A stretch of 63,087 nt of DNA, the filler included, from Parasitella parasitica NRRL 2501 (Eukaryota > Fungi > Mucoromycota), in assembly GCA_025201805.1 (NCBI GenBank). It is 4 parts of 4 records of this genome, joined end to end, with 100 filler letters (N's around TTAATTAATTAA, not from the genome) between each part and the next. Parts side by side here need not be neighbours in the genome. Positions count along the whole stretch, not along the records: positions 23,625 to 48,450 come from MU619421.1; 3 more parts are not named here. One strand, given 5' to 3'. The notes beneath the pieces are model-generated. The model was given only the letters and a program-made list of their open reading frames with translations. It was not told the DNA's origin and ran no database searches. The first letter of the stretch is position 1, and every line of letters begins with the position of its first letter. This document shows positions 5,422-43,270 of this stretch, piece after piece. The position numbers were made by a program, and so were the translations under genes.

Positions 5422-7283
<1,862 letters not shown>

Positions 7284-7569
7284 TTTTTATGTATATCTAT
7301 CGTTCTTTATTATCTTCATAATATATTACTTCACTATAATAATTGCCCATTTAATGACTCATACATATACTGAATCAGCCTGCAAGTGCAGCGAGAAAGC
7401 ATAAAGGAAAATGTAAAAAAGATCTGCCGATATCAACAGTCGAGCTGGTTTAAGAATGCTCCTTATTATCCATAATGCAACAAGGCTTAATAAAATATAT
7501 TTTGTTCTGATCAGTCAACTAGTATTGTTGCTAAATTAAACTTAGAGTTTTTAGAGAGAACCATAAAAA

Positions 7570-7639
7570 ATCTGATAAATATCTGGTACTACAGGCGATG
7601 AGTAATTATGATACACAAAGCAATTCACTTTTATCTGAT
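7570..7639. promoter_or_regulatory. Two ATCWGATAA GATA-factor (SreA/Sre1-type) motifs upstream of the Sfh5-like gene
   Basis: ATCTGATAA at 7570-7578 (+) and TTATCTGAT (=ATCAGATAA on minus) at 7631-7639. Confidence 0.4.
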
Positions 7640-7909
7640 TTAGCTTATCATCCTGAATTCCATGCATTCGTTCACCTTCTTTGTTATATAGCGAGTACTT
7701 TCATGATCCTTTAATCAGTTGAATATGCATAGAGATGTAAAATTTCACACTGCTATTAAATGTATAAAAAGGCTAAACTTGAGGATCTTATATGAAGTGT
7801 CACGGTCTGTTTTTTCTGTGATACGTATATAAGCTATAGAGAAGAGAGTTTTTTTTTTATTTTTTACTTTTCTTTCTCTTTCTTGCTCTTAACGAAATAC
7901 TGTATAATT

Positions 7910-9037
7910 ATGCAACCTATCACTGCTGCAGAAAAGGAATCAGTAGATAAATTAAAGGCAAAATTAAGCGATATCAAGCAGGCAGCACAAGTTCCTGAAG
8001 GATGTAAGCTTTGGGACATCTCACTTGATCAAAAATCGACTGATTCTAGACTCGATGTTCTTTTAGTCAAATTCATTAGAGCCAGGTACTTATTAGAATT
8101 AATAGCTTATGCGATGTATTAATCGAATTCAAAATACATATAGAGAGTCTGATTTGAGCAAGGCTACTCAAATGCTGACTGACACTCTGATTTGGAGAAA
8201 AGATTTTGGGGCTGATAACCTTTTAGATGAGGCTATTGATGATAGCATTTTGGGATCAGTCAGTTATATTTACAAGACAGACAAACAAGGTCGTCCTGTT
8301 TGCTACAACTTTTATGGCGATATCGATCAGGAAAAGGTGTTTGGTGACAAGGACAAATTCATTCGCTGGAGGATTCAAGTCATGGAAAGAGGAGTCCAGC
8401 TAATCGACTTTGTCAATACGGATTCCATGGTTGTCATTCATGACTACAAAGATGCATCTCTTTTTGGTCGTTCAAGCAATGCAAAAGCAGCTACAAAAGA
8501 AATCATCAAAATTATGCAAGATAATTATCCTGAGTTTTTGGTAGGTGTCAGCTAAGATAACCATAAATGCCTCTTTGTTGATTTAAAGTTCTGAATCAGG
8601 CTGTCAAATATTTTGTTAATGTACCTTACTGGGGTAGCTTAATCTTTAAGCTGGTTCGTCCATTGTTGTCTGAAGCAACGACAAAGAAATTCGTAGTCTG
8701 TTCAAAGTAAGAGCGCAAGTTTAGAAGATTCTATAAAACGGTTTCTGACTCAATTTTATTTATACATTTATATAGTGATGAACTCTATCAGTCATTGACC
8801 AATTCAATCGATGAAGCTAATCTACCCAATGTTTACCAAAAGTCGAGGGAAAAGCAACCACACGAAGAGAGCTCATCTGCTGACATGACTACATCTAAAG
8901 CAGCAGCAGTAGCCCCTATTATAGCTGACGTACCTGATAATGACAAAGCGGCTGCCGTGTTGACCTCTGAGGAACCAATTGCGAGCGTTACAAATAATCA
9001 AGAATCTGCCAACACGACTAACACCACTACTGCTTAA
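7910..9037 (+). CDS. SFH5: CRAL-TRIO (Sec14-family) protein, Sfh5/patellin-like, 4 exons
   Basis: LVKFIRAR, MLTDTLIWRKDF, PVCYNFYG, FIRWRIQVMERG, VIHDYK, QDNYPEFL|AVKYFVNVP. Confidence 0.85.
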
Positions 9038-29848: not shown

Positions 29849-31855
29849 ATGAATTCCACTCAAGAATCAAAAAAGTGGCATCAAGCTACTTCATTGCAGC
29901 ATCCAATGAATGACACTAGCAATATGCCTCAATCACCCCAGCTACAACAGTATTCTCCAATGCCAGCAATGGATCACCTTAGTTACGGCCAGTCATTTCC
30001 TCAGGGTCCTATGCATCCTCCTGTGTAAGTACCGTTGCTATTTTCCTATGATGGTGCAACATTGCACTCATCTTAAAAAAAGAGCTTTTTAACAATTTGA
30101 TACACTATAGCCATAACCATCATCATCAGCTTCCACCCCAAAGCAGCTATTCGCCTGCTAGAAAATCAGATTCAGATCCTCACTTACCTGGGTAAAATAG
30201 GCTGTAATAGTCATTAAAACTAGTTTTAATAACATACTTATTCGCTACATCTAGTATGATGGCTCTTTCTCAACCTGGTACTCCTCGCCCTAACCACCAC
30301 ACATCTCCAATCCCCAAAAAAGCACATGCAGATTATACCACTTCATCATTCCACGCTGCTCCTTATGCTCATCCTGCTCTTGTTCGCAAAAGAGGAAGAA
30401 GCGAACTGTTTTCTACCGAGCTGGGTCCATTCTTTAGCTCCACAAAACCTGTCGACAATTTATACGGGCTGGACAGATCAACTTTGTAAGTGTTTTCTCT
30501 CTCTTTGCACTCATCCTTTAATAACAAATTTCGACAGATTGACTCTTCGCATCCAAGCTAAAATGGATAGAGGCTTCTTTTTGGCCGATAACGATTGGAC
30601 ATGTTATCGCAGAAATTATTTTCAAGTGAGTGGGGCTTTTGGTATTCATGGTTTGAACCATTATTACGCTGATCAAGAAACGCAATGCTTGGTTCAAGTG
30701 GACGGTGCCTTTCACCCAGTCCGTAACTTTTCCATGAACATCTCAGCCCGTGTCTCAAATAGTGATAAAAAGATCGATTTGGTCCAACATACCCCCAAGA
30801 GAGATAAAGGCCCTCAATCTACACCTACCGCTAGATTGATTATGCCTGGTGGCAATCTGAGCATGAGTTCTGTGGGTGCCAATCAAAGTATAGTTACCTT
30901 TGAAAGAATTCAATTCAAAACAGCCACCGCAAATAATGGCAAAAGAAGAGCTGCTCAGCAATACTACGTTTGCTTGGTCGATCTTTATGCTGAAATCGAA
31001 GGCAACAAGAAGATTAAGATTGCCTCATGTCAATCTGCTCCTTTAGTTGTACGTGGTCGAAGCCCAGGTCATTATTCTGATAATCACGACAGATATGAAA
31101 GTACCAGCAACTCAATTCCTGTGGGTGCAGTTAATCCTCCTCCTTCCTCTCAGCTCCAACATCAAGAAGGCCGGTATAATACTGCTACTGCTTCTACTTC
31201 TGCTCCTTTTACTCGACCTCCAATGACACCTCCTGGCGTTATGGGGCCCGATTATAGCTCGCCCTATTCTTATCAACCTTATCCTACAAACTATTCGCAT
31301 TTTCCTGGTGGACAAGGACCAATGCAAGGTGGTATGTTGCCTCCTACACCAACTGGTCAACATCCATCTCATCACCACCCTCACCACTCTCAACCACAGC
31401 ACAACAGCAGCTCTTATATGATACCAAGCATGACATCAGACCCATCTTCATCCGAGACATCATCTCCTGATCTTTATAACGGAGAATTTGGCCATGGAAA
31501 CAACGGTGGGGCACCTGCAGCTAATGGTGGCAATAACGTGTTGCACGAAGAAGCTAATAGAATGAACCAACCACCCCAATTACCCCATCCTCATCATGGT
31601 ATGAACCATATGCATATGCCTGCTATGGATGGCAATGATTGGCGTGGACGTATACCTAGTGGACATCAATCTCCTGCCATTGGATACGAACATCACCCAA
31701 ACTCATATTTCTCTCAATCTCCATCAAACAATAGTGGCCCAAGTGCTTTTTCTAATCCCCCTGCTCAAACTACGGCTTATGGTTCCACTCATGTTGCTCC
31801 TGCTTCAAGAAAATACACATCAAGCCCTACTACAATCCAACAACAAGCATCGTAA
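29849..31855 (+). CDS. Ndt80/PhoG family (p53-like fold) transcription factor, multi-exon
   Basis: DNDWTCYRRNYFQVS, LVQHTPKRDKGPQ, FERIQFKTATANNGKRRAAQQYY, PLVVRGRSPGHY; low-complexity P/Q/H/S termini; start codon less certain. Confidence 0.93.
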
Positions 31856-32258
31856 AACATTCAGTTTAGATATTAACTTAATACCACACAGTCCGCTATT
31901 TTTAATTCTTGTATAAGCCTTTTGTTTGAATCTATATAACTTTTTCCAAGACCATGCTATTTTTATATCTCTATTACTGTTTTAAGCTCTTTTTATTACA
32001 AAAATATATATGTGTTATTATCATCATTATCATCATTACCATCTTTTGACATTTTATATATGGTGTCACATTTTTATTGTATACGGCTAATCTTGACCTC
32101 CCTTTCATAATAAACAGTGAAAGGATACACGAGCATATTCGACAAACAATCTGATAGTGTCTATGTTTCACTTACGTCGTTGCACATACATACGGATGTT
32201 TTAACCAATGTGACTACTGGAGTAACTTAACGAGGTTTTATCTTCTTTGCCTTTCATC

Positions 32259-34249
32259 ATGCCTCTGGAATGCAAAGAATTCGAGACTCTTTTGCGACAT
32301 AATCAACTGGAATCAATTACAAATAACCGAGAATTCATACTGTCTTTCCTTGATCAATTGCATACAGTAAAAAAGCAACACGCTCTTTACCATTGAAAGT
32401 GTTTCGTAACAACATACGCATGTAGATTTTGAAAGAGCTGACTACTTCAAAACAATGTTATGAAATCTACCCTCAAATCGGGTCACTTTTAACTCAAGCT
32501 TCAGTAATTTAAACATACATACTGCACATGAAAATCTAGCTAATCCTTCATCACTAAGATACATCCTTATATAGGCCATGATTTCGATATATCAAAGCTA
32601 GTATTATCCTGTCTCATGGAATATGCTAAACTGAATCTTGAACCTACCAACAATCATCCAATTGCATCAAAGTAATGTTTAAAAACAAACATACACTCAT
32701 TTTATTTATTTATTGGTAGTTCTGATCTCTGGTGCATTATTCGATTGCGGCGTCTTATAAGTGTAGAAAAATCTCAAACATCCAATGTCGATATTCTAAT
32801 CGCCAAAATATTGGAGCTACTGGATAAACAAGATAGCAACAGTGCAGCATTAAATAAAAGGATTTCAAATGCTTGCTTAGGATTAGTGCATGAAGAAAAG
32901 GCATTCCCTGTTATCGAGAGATTTGTTTGCCTTGCATTATCACAGCGCGAGGAGGTTACAGCTGATTTGATCAATTTTGATCCACCACAGAGGCTGCTTT
33001 CTGATCAATTCTTGAGCCATCTTGCGGCAAATGATTGTTTGCGTAAACAAGCAGTAATATGCTGGTCGAATGAGACTAAAACAAGGTACTCCTTGTACCA
33101 ATTCTATTTAACAATAGCACTGGCTAAATGATTAGTAAATAGGTTGTTGTTGCATTATAGTGAATTACTGGACACCGAAATTTTAGATCTAATTGCACTG
33201 TATATTTACCCGAACAATTATACTAGCATACATGCAATACAACAGCAATTGTGTCAATACCATCTTTTGAAGATTGCTATGTCGTCCTCTGCCCTGAGCG
33301 AAATCTTGATAGCCAAACTGGCGTCATATGTGGTTTTACTTGCAGATTGGAGAGTCGTACGTATAATGCAAAGTGTTTACCGTATTTTAGAGACAGCAAG
33401 ATCCTGCAAAATATTCACAGAATTTATCTCACAAGAATTTAAGTCGTTATCCAATTATATTTACAATGGATCGTTGACGTCCATCGAAACCAGAAGGAAC
33501 ATGATTTGGTGTTTATCATTAGCCTCCATCCGAAATATTTGGCCACTTATTGACACACTGGTAAATTGGGTGCAAACATCTGATCTATGGAGCTGTGTGG
33601 TAAGTTGTGTATTCTGCGTGAAATTATTAATATATAATCTGATGGGATTTTCCAGCAGGAAGACATTCTTGTATATGTCAATTGGATAATATGCCCCACA
33701 AACGACAACAGAGAATCCCGTTCATTCGACGATTTAAAAAGCTGGATTCAATCAAATCAAGGTACATTGGGAGAACTATTTCACAAGCACTAAGTGGTAA
33801 CACGTATTCCTTTCCAGGAAAAGGTCTTTTTCACAACTTGGCCAGTCTATGGCGTAAATTATTCAGCGGCAATGCAGTTATTCTCTCCTTGTTCGTTATA
33901 TCGATTCTAAATCAATTTAGCTCTGATCAGCAAATATCATTGGTACTATCAACAGGCACAGCACACGTTAAAAAAAGCAAAGACTAATTTTTCTTGCTAT
34001 ACAGATCCAAACCATTTATTTTTCATCGGTAGTTGAAGGAGATGACCCAATGTAGGCTATTTACAATAAAAGAAAAGGAGTTTTCAACTAAAATACCTTT
34101 GGTTTAGTAGTAGGACTGTCGATGATAAGAAGAATAACATGGCAAATATTTATATTCTATTAGATTCCTTGGAGGATTTAGAGTCTATGATACCCACAGT
34201 AAATGTCCCACACATTATAAATCATATTCATGTGCAATTATTAAAGTAA
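32259..34249 (+). CDS. Multi-exon alpha-helical protein, putative FANCC (Fanconi anemia group C) homolog
   Basis: Introns 32367-32425, 32504-32558, 32672-32719 and later ones give a continuous ORF; the spliced N-terminus FLDQLHT|ILKEL...IYPQIGSLLTQAS|IHPYIGHDFDISKLVLSCL resembles FANCC as recalled; 3' exons are approximate. Confidence 0.65.
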
Positions 34250-36052
34250 AACTTTAAATCGCTCGGGATAAAAAAAGCAGGGCCTTTCATGCTTTTTGTT
34301 TTGGGTATTTCATACAATATTAGAAGATCTTGGGCCTTGTTTGGTACAACAACTTATAGAGTTTCGTATGCTTCCACTAGTGAAACATTGCACACATTCT
34401 TTTCTTTTTTTTATTTTATTTTTTTGTAAAATCACAGTGCCACAAAAAAAAAGGGAGCTTTTAAACCGAAGCTGGCTATGTTGCACATTTTTCAGCCATC
34501 TTTTTCCTGTGCTACGAAGTCATACTGCTTTGTATTAGAGCTTTTAATAAAATACTATTGAAATTTTGCGAATAGCGCAATCCAATTTCTCTTTATCTTA
34601 TGACACAATTCGTTTTCTGATCTATTTCAATTGATAATATTTGATGAGCGTTTTCCGGGAATGTATTAGATCCGCAAAAATGATTGAGCGAGAGAAGGAA
34701 GGCATTTACGAGCATGCGAACATCCCACTTAATATCGTTGATCTACTTGTCTTCCACAGCTTGATAGAATCGGTCATTTTTTTAACCGATTCAAGTGCTT
34801 CGAGACAAACCATATGATTTCTCAGAGCTCGTAAAGAAATAGCAAAAAAATGAACAATACAGGGAAGGTTTCAAAGTGGGAAAGGAGATACTATAGATAT
34901 AATTAGAAGTTTTCAATCCGTATCAGCCATTGTTCCAGCGGTTGGGTGAGCTAAAGATGGCTTTTATCCTGCTTCGGTTATTCCAGTATTGGATCACGAA
35001 AAGGATCATGGGACCCAAAATAAGAAATCTAAGCGTAAATTAAAACTGTATTTCAAGCAATAAAACCTTTGTGCAAATCAATTCATAAAGAAGAAGACTA
35101 AATGTTGTGAGCATAACACCCACTGAAGAGTTGAAAAATACACAATTTGGGGCATTGTTCATGCACAAAACAATGAAAAGGATTATTTATCAAGATAGCT
35201 GGATATATTCTTCTCCTGCGTTTCTAATCAATATCATCAATCAAGTTCTCAAGGCTTCTTTTCTATATGTGCAAATCCCATTCGGATTCGTAAATTAACC
35301 AAACGTTTGTTTATCAAGCTATCATCCCGACAGCTCAATACTTTTTAATTATGTGTGTGGCTATCGATCAAATTGACAGCCATTTAAAGCGGTACGCGCA
35401 TTGTTTAAAGCAGTGCGAGATTAAGCATGATATCAAAAGGCTTTAGTGCACAGGATTTAGTTTGTATCACTGCATCAAAGAAAACTATGCGACAACATAC
35501 TTGTTCACTGAATAACATGTAAGAACAGTTGTATTGAGAAATATTCTACATTTGAAAAATGCAGCACTTGCGATAGCTTTTTATATATAGCTCGTAAATG
35601 TACATCCTGAACTTGGTAATCATTGGGTGCATTATGGATATCTGCATAAGGGGGCTATTGGTTTGGAGAGATATTTGGTGCTTGTAATTGAAATCTATTA
35701 CATCTATTATGCCGTGCGTATAGGTTAATTAAAAGTGTGCTTGAGCCTTATTCTCCATGAACTCTCTCATTTCCCAATGATATGTATTTTTGGATACGCT
35801 GATAATTGCGTTTACTTACCCAAACATTTGGAGCTTTTGATTTTGAGTTTGTGGACCACATTAAGCCTACTTTAAATAGCCGAAAACAAAAGAGTGAAAA
35901 CACACAATCCGCATGATTCATAGTGTGTGCGAGCCCCATACTATTGGAAGAACCCCTTGGTTTTTTTCTTGCCCTTTTCCCTTTTTTCATCTTGAGAGTT
36001 TCTTGTTTACTCTTTCATCTTTTTCTTTCTCAAAAAATATAGTACAATAATA

Positions 36053-37128
36053 ATGGCTGCTGTAAGTAATACCTTTTTATCAAAAGATATATAACTTGGC
36101 TAACGTATTGGTGAATAGGAACGTGAAGACCAAGTAAGATAAAAAGTTGAAAAGTGTTTTCTAATAGGACCAACTTTTCCCTTCCTCTCCTATTTTCAGG
36201 TTTACATGGCAAAGATTGCTGAACAAGCAGAACGTTATGATGGTAAGTTTCATTCCCTGCGTTTTCACACCTATAAAATATGCCAGTATATTAATGATAA
36301 CGACGATAATAATAAAAGAAATGGTGTTATATATGAAGGAAGTTGCCAAGGTATTGTTTATTTACCTTATTCTATCGTATACTACTAAACTCTCAATAGT
36401 TGTCGGTTGATTTAACTGTTGAAGAGCGCAATCTTTTATCTGTCGCGTTTAAAAACGTGATCGGTGCTCGTCGTGCATCCTGGAGAATTGTATCATCAAT
36501 CGAACAAAAGGAAGAAAGCAAAGACCACAAAAATCAAGTTGAAAAGATCAAAGAATACAGAAAGAAGATTGAGAACGAGCTCTATGATGTTTGTAACGAT
36601 ATCTTGAGCCTTTTAGATGAGTACTTGATTCCTAATGCACAAGGCGGTGAAGCCAAGGTCTTTTATTTCAAGATGAAGGGCGATTATCATCGTTATGTTG
36701 CTGAATATGCTACTGACGAGAACCGAAAAGTTGCAGCCGAAAAAGCTCTTGACGCTTATCAAACTGCTACTGACGTGGCTCAGGTTGAACTTGCCACCAC
36801 TCATCCTATTCGTCTAGGCCTTGCTTTGAACTTCTCCGTATTCTACTACGAGATTATGAATTCGCCTGATCGTGCTTGCAATTTGGCTAAACAAGCTTTC
36901 GATGATGCCATTGCTGAACTCGATACTTTAAGTGAGGAATCTTACAAGGATTCCACCTTGATTATGCAATTATTGAGAGATAATTTAACATTGTGGACCT
37001 CAGATCTTCAGGAAGGTAAGCTGTTGTTTTTTCGTTCTTGTTGTTTGTATATTTATTCAGAAACCTTCATTGCTCATGTAGCTGAAGCTGGTAAGGCGGA
37101 CAATTCAAATCCTACAACTGACGCTTAA
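36053..37128 (+). CDS. 14-3-3 protein (Bmh/Rad24 family) with 5' micro-exons
   Basis: AEQAERYD|[67 protein letters not shown]. Confidence 0.98.
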
Positions 37129-39159: not shown

Positions 39160-41276
39160 ATGCCTGTTCCTTCAATTGATTTCGATAGAAACGAACATTT
39201 TGCAAGCTTTGCTACTACATCTCGCTTGGTTGCTTGCTTGACAAGTGAATCCTTAATTCCTGCCTATTTTATACCTGTTGCTAAGGAAACCGAAAAATCC
39301 ATAGGTCTTTGTTTGTTGCTTCGTCCTGTCAAGGGCCAGGAGGAAGCAATCATCCATCAAGTTACATTGGATTCTGTATTGGCTGTCATTCCTTTACGTG
39401 GTCTTCCCATCTTGGATACCGATACTTCTGTCAATTGGAACGGCGTTGTCTGTACCCGCATTTCTCTAATTGATAGTCTGGATATGCAACCCCACATTTA
39501 CTCTGTTGTCACCGGCACTGGTGATAAGCGTAGATCTGGTGACGATTATGTTAAGCAAGCGCTGGTCTCTGTCTTGTCTCCTTCAGCTACCAATTTGAGC
39601 GAGTTTCATTTACAAGATAGCTATGACGCAGTTCATTTGTGGCATCGTTTTGCTAGCGATTTCGAAGTCAATGGTAAATTGCGGGAACAGATTGGACAAG
39701 AATTAGGTTCCTCGATCAACTTTCAAAGTAAGCGCAGGAAACATCATAATGATTATACTTCATGCCAACAGAATTCTTTTATAGAATACACTTATGATCA
39801 TCCCAAGCAGCTACCCGGTTTAGAATCATCTACCATTGCTTGGGAGCAATCCGTTGTTGAAGGACATGCCACTCATCCTGTAAGTAATTGATTTTAACTA
39901 GTGTGGTTTATATATTTATGAGTATGAGTAGATGCACAAAGCCCGTAAAAGCTACCCTCCTATGAAAGCTTTACATCCTGGGTCATACGATTTAGAGCAT
40001 CCACAGATCCGTCTTGTTGGCCTTCCCAGACAAAGCGCGGTCCTTCGGGGTGACTATGAGGAGCTTGCTCAACCTCTTGTCAATGCTCTTTTCGAAGTTG
40101 GTGGAGATGCCAAGCAGTTGCGTTCTAAATTCTCTAATTATACATTCATTGCTATTCACGAGCTTCAATTGCCCAACATTGAGCAAAAGTTCCCCGATGC
40201 TCACATCTTCCCTGCACAGTACTCCCTCTACGTTGAAGCCTTGGCATCTCTCCGATCAGTCGCGAAGCCCGATATTTTGCCAGGTTTAAGCGTCAAGTTA
40301 TGTCTGGGCATCAAGATCTCGTCTGCTCTTCGCACTGTCACTCCGTTCACTACCTATTTTGGCCCCGGGTTTTCCAAGCTGGTGCCCAAACTTACTTATG
40401 ATCGTGATGTGTTATACGTTGAACGAGAATTAGGTACCATCTGTTATCGTCACGATGACTCTGATGTAGCCAAACATTGCAGTAGTGTCATCCGTGAGGC
40501 CATTGAATATAGTCCTGAATATAAAGACGATTTGTTTATTCCGTGTGGAGTTCTTGTTGAAAAGATCCAAAAGCCTGATACTGATGAAACGCTTGTTACT
40601 CGAGTCTGGGGTTTGGACACTAAGGAAAAGAGGATTGCATTTTTGGAGAGGTAAAGATCATGGCTTTTTGAAAATGCAGTGTCGCCTTACTCGTTTCGTC
40701 TAGATATATCGACCTAGCCCTCCGCGCTTTTTTACCACCTTGTCTCGAAAATGGCGTCGCTTTTGAAGCTCATGGTCAGAATACGTTGGCCAGATTCGAT
40801 AGAAAAACTGGTAAATTGAAGGGGTTTGTGATTCGTGATTTTGGTGGCGTAAAAGTGCACAACGAAACTCTGAAGAAATCTATTGGCGAAGAATTAGATG
40901 TCTTACCTGAGAGTTGCGTTGAGGCACATTCCTTGGACGAAGTCTCCAAGCTTTTGTACCACACCCTTTTCCACTGTCAATTCCAGCGTTTGATCCGTGT
41001 GTTGAATCTTCATTATAATGGCGTTGGCTGGGAAATGGTTCGTAACAAGATGTGTGAACTGATCCCCAAGGATCATGTCATGTGGCCGATGTTTATGGGA
41101 CATGAAAAGGTGCCGGGTAAATGCTTGGTTCGTATGAAGATTGACGAACTTTACCGTGATGTAAGTGATTTTTATAATATCTCGCCATGTAAATTTAAAA
41201 CAAATGATTATAGTACATTTACCGCCCTGTGCCCAACATGATTTTTTTCAAACCTCAGCAAGTTCCCCGTGTTTAA
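39160..41276 (+). CDS. rfs: NRPS-independent siderophore (IucA/IucC family) synthetase, rhizoferrin synthetase-like, 5 exons
   Basis: WEQSVVEGHATHP|MHKAR, ALASLRSV, KLCLGIKISSALRTVT, GVAFEAHGQNTLAR, IRDFGGVK. Confidence 0.93.
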
Positions 41277-41532: not shown

Positions 41533-43270
41533 TTACACAAGATCCAAAAGATTATCTCTTTTTTCATTCTCCCTTTCCATAAAGTCATTCATATGTGCAG
41601 AAGTAGAATATCCATGAGCTTTCATATCTGCTAATGCTGCTTCTAATCTGGGATCATTTGCTCTGGATAGTGTTTTCACGAGCTTAAAGTAACAGCCTCT
41701 CAGAGGGGTCATTTTAAGTTTTTTCATGCGTTCCAGGTATGTAAAAGCATCTTCATAATCCTCACGTGTGCACATCAGAGTCACCATTTTACTGAGCGAT
41801 GTAACTGATGGTTTGACGCCCTTTGTAACAAATTCTTGATAAATGGAGGTTCCTAGCTCCGTATCTTTGCAATGAATGCAAGCATCTAATGTTGCATCTA
41901 GTGTTTCGTTATTGGGTGTCACGCCAAGACGTTTTGTTTGGCCATACAGAGAGATCGCTTCGTCGTATTTTCTATTAAACGCAAATGCATGAATCACAAG
42001 ATTAAATGCAGTTACGTCAACGGGTTCTCCCCTATACGACATGTCCTCCAAAATATCTCTTGCCCTGTAAATCGCATTGACATCTCGTCCAATTTTGTAA
42101 GCTACAGGAAGCGCTAGTTTCTTGTTTGGTATAATGCCTGCTTCCCGCATAGTTGAAAACACTTTGAATGTGCTGGCAATGTCTCCAGTCGATGCAAATG
42201 CGTCGATCAAAGGTGCAAAATGACATTCGCGATAGGTGAAGCCAAGTTTACCAATAATTCGGATAACATCTCCTGCTAATATCGGGTCGCTGTGTTTTCC
42301 AGCCAAATCCAAAACGTACAAACACAGGCCCTCATCTGGACTGTATTGGCAATCAATTACTGCTTTTTTCCAGCTTGACACTACAGGAGCATACTATCAA
42401 AGCTTATCAGCTTTATCTAAAAAGAGATCCCATTTATTACAGCTTACATGTCCTTCTACAGCAGCACATCGAAGTAACCGCATGTAGAGCATCTTGTCCT
42501 TTTCTCTAAACGTTTCTAGTTTTTCGACTTCTTCTAATAGGTCAGAGGCAATCGTGGGTTCGCGTAATTGTAAAGCGATATCAATCATAGACAGATAACT
42601 GAGCAATCCTGGTACCATATCCCTTCCCTTCATTAATTCTAACGTCTCCAAAGCCCTTTCCAGCTCTAAATTTTGCCGCATACAGAGAAACATATAATAA
42701 TAAGTCTTGGTGGTTTTAGAGTATCCGTATCGCTCCATTGCATTCAGTATTTTAGCTTGTAGGATTGAATCACCTATCTTTGCAGCCAACTATTACGCAT
42801 GCTGTTACACCCCAGGTCATTGAATCAGATCATCATAGTTTTCCTTACCTCTAATGACTTTTGGCAATAGTCTCTGCTAGGCCTCAATCCTTCACCTTCC
42901 ATTTGCTTTAATAATGAATATGCCTTGGAGCTGTCACTTTGTTTTGCATAGGCACTCAGCATATGCTCGTACGACTCATTGTTTAACTTGACTCCATTCG
43001 CGCGAAGATGGTTAGCTAGCTGTAATACTTTAGTTACTGTGCTTCCAGCACCATGATGGCGGGCTGCTGAATCATCCAGTACTCGAAACATTTTCATGTT
43101 GATCTCTTCTAGCAAGGAATTCGAGGTATAAGGTCGACATGTCAAATGAACTGAATTGTTTATGCCACCTATCTAAAGAGTGAGTATTTTGGTATACGAA
43201 TCTCGGCTGTGCTCTTACTCTTTGCAAGTTTTGGCCGATACTTGCACGGACCTAATATTCTTTTGAACAT
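41533..43270 (-). CDS. Mitochondrial pentatricopeptide-repeat (PPR) protein, 4 exons
   Basis: Repeated ~35-aa helical units (SYEHMLSAYAK...MEGEGLRPS; FAPLIDAFASTGD...MREAGIIPN; AFNLVIHAFA); basic presequence MFKRILG. Confidence 0.88.

Follow-up and report, generated by a model that had tools for sequence, protein, structure and literature searches.

The locus examined here raises the question of whether fungi of the order Mucorales possess FANCC. FANCC is a helical scaffold; with its partners FANCE and FANCF, it makes up the arm by which the Fanconi core ubiquitin ligase recognises its substrate. The vertebrate core complex contains the FANCL/UBE2T ligase, which mono-ubiquitinates FANCD2–FANCI at stalled replication forks and interstrand crosslinks. 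The published record on fungal FANCC is contradictory: Singh et al. 2023 mention, in a single sentence, a Rhizopus azygosporus FANCC homologue, RCH79564.1, with an HHpred probability of 100% at 15% identity (PMC10085685), whereas a 2024 survey of early-diverging fungi states that FANCC is absent from all fungi (PMC11061109). In the former work, reciprocal HHpred comparisons of RCH90546.1 and RCH79564.1 are both given at 100% probability, with 21% and 15% identity, respectively (PMC10085685). The survey relied on BLASTp at E <= 1e-5 (PMC11061109), a search that is blind to identities of 10–16%.

Gene structure of the FANCC-like locus

We analysed a stretch of 63,087 nucleotides (the window) from Parasitella parasitica, in which an earlier note, made from the sequence alone, had placed a hidden multi-exon gene resembling FANCC. 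As that note had remarked, only fragments are visible in the open reading frames: our ORF list and the sequence of 31500–35200 show coding on the + strand solely as pieces, parted by short AT-rich GT...AG stretches. Taken together, these pieces form a nine-exon gene at 32259–34249 (+) with eight short GT..AG introns (Table 1). Each of the nine exons has an open translation, 513 codons in all, and the peptide blocks quoted in the earlier note are found among these translations.

Table 1. Exons, introns and 3' untranslated region of the FANCC-like gene, with positions counted along the window
Feature	Coordinates	Strand	Details
Exon 1	32259..32366	+	36 codons, start ATG 32259; donor joint 32366>32426 in transcript contig
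Intron 1	32367..32425	+	59 nt, GT..AG; joint in X1 contig
Exon 2	32426..32503	+	26 codons; core of the FANCC-like N-terminal motif; transcript contig
Intron 2	32504..32558	+	55 nt, GT..AG; joint in X1 contig
Exon 3	32559..32671	+	37 codons + 2 nt; contig 1 end at 32671; ATG of the public model (32616) inside
Intron 3	32672..32719	+	48 nt, GT..AG; contig ends on both sides, frame, P0071
Exon 4	32720..33085	+	Transcript contig; 100% identical to P0071 residues 20-140
Intron 4	33086..33142	+	57 nt, GT..AG; joint in X1 contig
Exon 5	33143..33599	+	Largest exon, 152 full codons; transcript contig
Intron 5	33600..33655	+	56 nt, GT..AG; joint in X1 contig
Exon 6	33656..33761	+	Transcript contig and P0071
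Intron 6	33762..33817	+	56 nt, GT..AG; joint in X1 contig
Exon 7	33818..33942	+	Transcript contig and P0071
Intron 7	33943..34004	+	62 nt, GT..AG; joint in X1 contig
Exon 8	34005..34051	+	Transcript contig and P0071
Intron 8	34052..34107	+	56 nt, GT..AG; joint in X1 contig
Exon 9	34108..34249	+	TAA stop 34247-34249; sequence, transcript contig, P0071
3' untranslated region	34250..34577 (minimum extent)	+	Transcript contig 2 reaches 34577

Transcript support comes from a public run, X1, in which 65% of the words sampled from 32200–34300 are present and whose record is silent on whether RNA was sequenced. Aligned to 32000–34600, X1 gives two contigs; they are 100% identical to the window, without mismatches, and skip seven GT..AG segments, which shows that X1 contains spliced RNA of this organism. 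The FANCC-like gene is expressed as spliced RNA. Seven of the eight introns are bridged by these contigs, and transcripts bear out these seven junctions, a check that the earlier note had proposed. The exception is intron 3, which no contig bridges and whose limits coincide exactly with the ends of contigs (32671 for contig 1, 32721 for the start of the following one). Its removal closes the reading frame (split codon AA|T = N) and its retention leads to an immediate stop, and the public protein model P0071 is continuous across the junction. All three introns that the earlier note had drawn by hand therefore hold, the first two as joints within a contig and the third by contig ends, reading frame and P0071 combined.

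The public annotation and its missing N-terminus

A public model of this gene already exists, as P0071, 'hypothetical protein BD408DRAFT_93770 [Parasitella parasitica]', with 432 amino acids. Its locus is contig MU619421.1 of assembly GCA_025201805.1, with the same neighbours as in the window (NDT80_PhoG, 14-3-3, IucA_IucC/FhuF and PPR). P0071 is 100% identical to the window exons from Met 32616 in exon 3 through exon 9, and its junctions at introns 3 to 8 agree exactly with the nine-exon model. What the public model lacks is the first 81 residues, that is, exons 1 and 2 plus 19 codons of exon 3, and this stretch is backed by the transcript contig as well as by the N-termini of Mucor orthologues, to which exon 1 aligns with 53–58% identity. 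The description of the gene as hidden accordingly applies to these 81 residues, and not to the remainder of the protein.

A second protein that is also labelled Parasitella parasitica, CEP13724.1 (P0001), is 72–88% identical to the window exons, compared with 100% for BD408DRAFT_93770. Such a strong difference suggests either a pair of paralogues or two sequenced strains that belong to different species despite their shared label 'Parasitella parasitica'.

A FANCC-like family across Mucorales

Exon 5, as the query of an exhaustive phmmer search of 1.84 billion representatives, returned only 21 proteins, every named one of which is from Mucorales, and profile searches added further relatives. 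By their names and accessions, all relatives belong to Mucorales: Mucor circinelloides, M. lusitanicus, M. ambiguus, M. hiemalis, M. saturninus and M. fragilis; Parasitella; Thamnidium, Cokeromyces, Benjaminiella, Choanephora, Mycotypha, Spinellus, Pilobolus and Pilaira; Rhizopus stolonifer, R. microsporus and R. arrhizus/delemar; and Lichtheimia, Zychaea and Phascolomyces. The FANCC-like family thus occurs across Mucorales. The window exons align colinearly with these relatives, as illustrated by P0024 of M. circinelloides, the closest well-annotated orthologue, whose identity to exons 1 to 6 is 53%, 84%, 77%, 56%, 61% and 71%, respectively (exon 2 being matched by P0024 residues 38–62). All relatives are annotated as hypothetical or unnamed, and many of the models are truncated. 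When a set of 5.8 billion proteins was searched with profiles, neither a member from outside Mucorales nor an animal or plant FANCC came up, although such searches need shared 5-residue words and this outcome does not imply absence.

Sequence searches point to FANCC

We consider next what kind of protein this family represents. P0024 passes the Pfam profile PF02106 (Fanconi_C) with an E-value of 1.3e-7 and 31.2 bits, where the curated cut-off is 25, residues 2–157 being matched to profile positions 19–163. P0024 is the only one of the roughly 25 family members scanned with Pfam to reach the Fanconi_C threshold, the other ~24 falling below it. In the window itself, Pfam scans of each exon taken singly gave nothing relevant, the first 81 residues being scanned in this way as three short pieces; phmmer searches of exons 4 and 5 against the PDB likewise gave no matches. 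The Fanconi_C scan that the earlier note had named as a check thus succeeds for the orthologue, and fails for single exons and for most relatives.

When four family profiles were searched against 177,635 PDB sequences, human FANCC (7kzp_C) was the only significant match in every case, with E-values of 3.4e-4 (profile A1), 5.6e-5 (A3), 1.1e-4 (A4) and 3.2e-4 (A5). All four matches align FANCC residues ~47–120 to the part encoded by exons 1–3, exon 2 lying within that stretch. It is only in the first ~100 residues that sequence gives a signal, and the rest of the match to FANCC rests on structure. The same division runs through the colinear blocks that the earlier note had compared with human FANCC: the first, N-terminal block is significant, and those beginning RISNACLGL and RLLSDQFL lie in HMMER stretches that are non-significant alone. 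A feature search of the ESM Atlas gave low recognition overall, with Fanconi_C at rank 6.

Predicted structures match FANCC from end to end

For the structural comparison, two family members were folded with AF2: P0022, a full-length Thamnidium homologue of 511 amino acids, using alignment A3; and P0071, the window's annotated product without the 81 N-terminal residues, using alignment A5. The P0022 model is all helical, with a pLDDT of 81.5 and a pTM of 0.69. In a Foldseek search of the PDB, it places 7kzp_C first (E 1e-4, TM 0.45/0.43, 15% identity), the TM of its other matches being at most 0.24. When the Foldseek list was realigned with VIA-align, 7kzp_C reached Z 16.8 over 448 residues, model residues 1–511 being laid against FANCC 6–555; it was followed by 9a0j_C, which comes from a different model of the Fanconi core complex (Z 13.4, rmsd 5.0 Å, 251 residues), and the chain after that had Z 8.9. 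Comparison with 48,161 representative chains, which is independent of Foldseek, again ranks 7kzp_C first at Z 16.8.

The P0071 model (pLDDT 82.7, pTM 0.78) leads to the same chain. Against the 48,161 representatives, 7kzp_C is first, with Z 16.8 and an rmsd of 7.1 Å over 376 residues, and model residues 8–431 map to FANCC 96–558, a register that is as expected given the missing N-terminus. Foldseek of this truncated model gave no match at E <= 0.001 and listed FANCC at rank 50 with an E-value of 0.045; by TM, FANCC is by far the best match (0.50/0.41). Over both models, Foldseek TM values are 0.45–0.50 for FANCC versus at most 0.27 for other chains. Structure prediction followed by Foldseek against human FANCC, a further check named in the earlier note, favours FANCC by both E-value and TM for P0022 and is less clear for P0071, where TM alone does so.

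Helical solenoids call for caution in this respect, as middling Z scores are common to many unrelated proteins of this type. One could accordingly argue that this is a HEAT/ARM-like alpha-solenoid protein restricted to its lineage, with no relation to FANCC, and that the matches merely reflect a shared helical-repeat architecture. Many helical-repeat chains do align to the models at Z 7–9, a shape search of the ESM Atlas returned only generic HEAT/ARM-like clusters (TM 0.3–0.48), and most family members have no Pfam match. We nevertheless disfavour this explanation and regard it as improbable: the searches that use sequence only single out FANCC and nothing else; FANCC leads the next chain by 5 to 8 Z units and aligns from end to end and in register in two independent models; and HHpred gives 100% for RCH79564.1 of Rhizopus (PMC10085685), a protein that we infer to be a member of the present family.

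A more specific version of the same concern is that the protein is a diverged subunit of some other complex built on helical scaffolds, such as an Integrator-type subunit. The second-best structural match is indeed an Integrator chain, 7pks_V, with Z 11.6 for P0022 and 9.1 for P0071 and 348–360 residues aligned. These Z scores are clearly lower than those of FANCC, identity is 8% compared with 10–16%, and Pfam scans of the family give no signal for Integrator or any other family, all of which makes this reading very improbable.

Comparison with known FANCC proteins

The family profiles, the Fanconi_C match of P0024 and the predicted-structure match together uphold the resemblance to FANCC seen in the earlier note, and we conclude that the gene at 32259–34249 is very probably a Mucorales orthologue of FANCC: a 513-residue, all-helical solenoid, very diverged, and most likely a partner of FANCE. 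The comparison with human FANCC (7KZP chain C; PF02106) shows how far the likeness extends. The two proteins are of similar length (558 residues in human versus 513 here), both are all-helical solenoids, their structures align colinearly from end to end at Z 16.8, and the N-terminal motif corresponds to FANCC residues ~47–120; in contrast, identity is only 10–16%, and most of the fungal members fall below the Pfam threshold.

Within fungi, the nearest precedent is RCH79564.1 of Rhizopus azygosporus, likewise from Mucorales and likewise called a remote FANCC homologue, in a single sentence that offers no gene structure, no comparison of folds and no survey of the family (Singh et al. 2023, PMC10085685). 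The family described here includes members from R. microsporus, R. stolonifer and R. arrhizus/delemar. A fungal FANCC is therefore not new in kind, the Rhizopus homologue having been published already (PMC10085685), and the earlier note overrated its novelty. Arabidopsis FANCC (At3g60310) is similar in being very diverged and recognised only through remote homology; it belongs to the plant lineage, binds FANCE and FANCF, and limits meiotic crossovers (PMC10085685).

The upstream NDT80 gene and other neighbours

The FANCC-like gene lies about 400 nt downstream, on the same strand, of a gene for an NDT80/PhoG-type DNA-binding protein (29849–31855 (+), ORF 30326–31855, Pfam E 6.5e-42). The same tandem occurs in Thamnidium elegans (L002, 3166–5383 followed by 6001–8047), and some of the Rhizopus gene models run the pair together as single proteins of 920–923 amino acids (P0036 and P0053), of which residues 161–535 are NDT80-like and 564–918 FANCC-like. 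In Lichtheimia, a SET-domain gene stands upstream of the FANCC-like gene instead of NDT80.

The transcript contigs also touch this neighbour. Contig 1 of X1 (2581 nt, mean depth 503) runs unbroken from upstream of 32000 into exons 1–3, where introns 1 and 2 are spliced out, and takes in the 3' flank of the NDT80 gene and the intergenic sequence as far as 32258. It goes no further than the end of exon 3, and the rest of the FANCC-like gene is a separate contig at a depth of 58. Judging from its span, contig 1 probably starts in the NDT80 gene's own mRNA, and its extension across both genes could be due to read-through transcription, to overlapping untranslated regions, or to an assembly join.

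Further downstream, the window holds a 14-3-3 protein gene (36400–37128 (+), Pfam E 1.7e-95), a gene for an IucA/IucC-FhuF type siderophore synthetase (39160–41241 (+), present as three consecutive ORFs and as a 633-aa protein in the source assembly), a PPR-repeat protein gene (41533–42789 (-)) and an assembly gap (a run of N) at ~46.6–47.25 kb. The synthetase is presumably the rhizoferrin synthetase known from Mucorales.

Proposed role in a Fanconi-type module

If FANCC of vertebrates and plants is a guide, the Mucorales protein would most likely pair with FANCE, and the two would recruit the substrate within a Fanconi-type core complex, with or without a FANCF-like partner. From the same analogy, we infer that its partners and biochemical role would be those of a Fanconi-type ubiquitin ligase. 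Several of the other components have been reported: for Mucoromycotina, these are FANCA, FANCE, FANCL, FANCM, FANCD2 and UBE2T, and FANCI is reported as expressed in Rhizopus delemar and in Mortierellomycotina (PMC11061109), with FANCE in Mucorales reported in both studies (PMC11061109, PMC10085685). FANCF and FANCG were not found in fungi in the BLASTp-based survey (PMC11061109), which means that the fungal complex may differ from the animal one.

That negative result, together with the conserved tandem with the NDT80_PhoG gene and the one contig that spans from the NDT80 3' flank (probably from NDT80 mRNA) into exons 1–3, can also be read in another way, namely that the protein truly descends from FANCC but has left the Fanconi-type ligase and taken on another role, possibly in the sexual cycle with the adjacent NDT80-type factor. 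We consider this unlikely, in that homologues of FANCE, FANCL, FANCM, FANCD2 and FANCI are reported in these fungi (PMC11061109, PMC10085685), adjacency of genes is no evidence of function, and the linkage is absent in Lichtheimia.

Returning to a FANCC that pairs with FANCE, a bolder scenario, possible if on balance doubtful, is that Mucorales keep a working FANCC–FANCE module, perhaps with a diverged and unrecognised FANCF, and that the NDT80 tandem and the transcripts across both genes reflect joint regulation in the sexual cycle. A working module of this kind would place an animal-type Fanconi core in the ancestor of fungi, with subsequent loss in Dikarya. The plant FANCC–FANCE–FANCF module limits class II meiotic crossovers (PMC10085685), and joint sexual-cycle regulation of NDT80 and FANCC, if true, would parallel that anti-crossover role.

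Implications

An expressed, Mucorales-wide FANCC family with the FANCC fold settles the contradiction in the literature and corrects an annotation. The reasons why the family has been overlooked can also be seen in the public models, which are labelled 'hypothetical', are often truncated and, for some Rhizopus genes, are fused to the upstream NDT80; the Parasitella model loses exactly the N-terminal stretch that bears the sequence signal. For the biology of these fungi, the family provides a concrete knockout target in the genetically tractable Mucor and Rhizopus, through which a Fanconi-type crosslink-repair or anti-crossover module may be approached in fungi.
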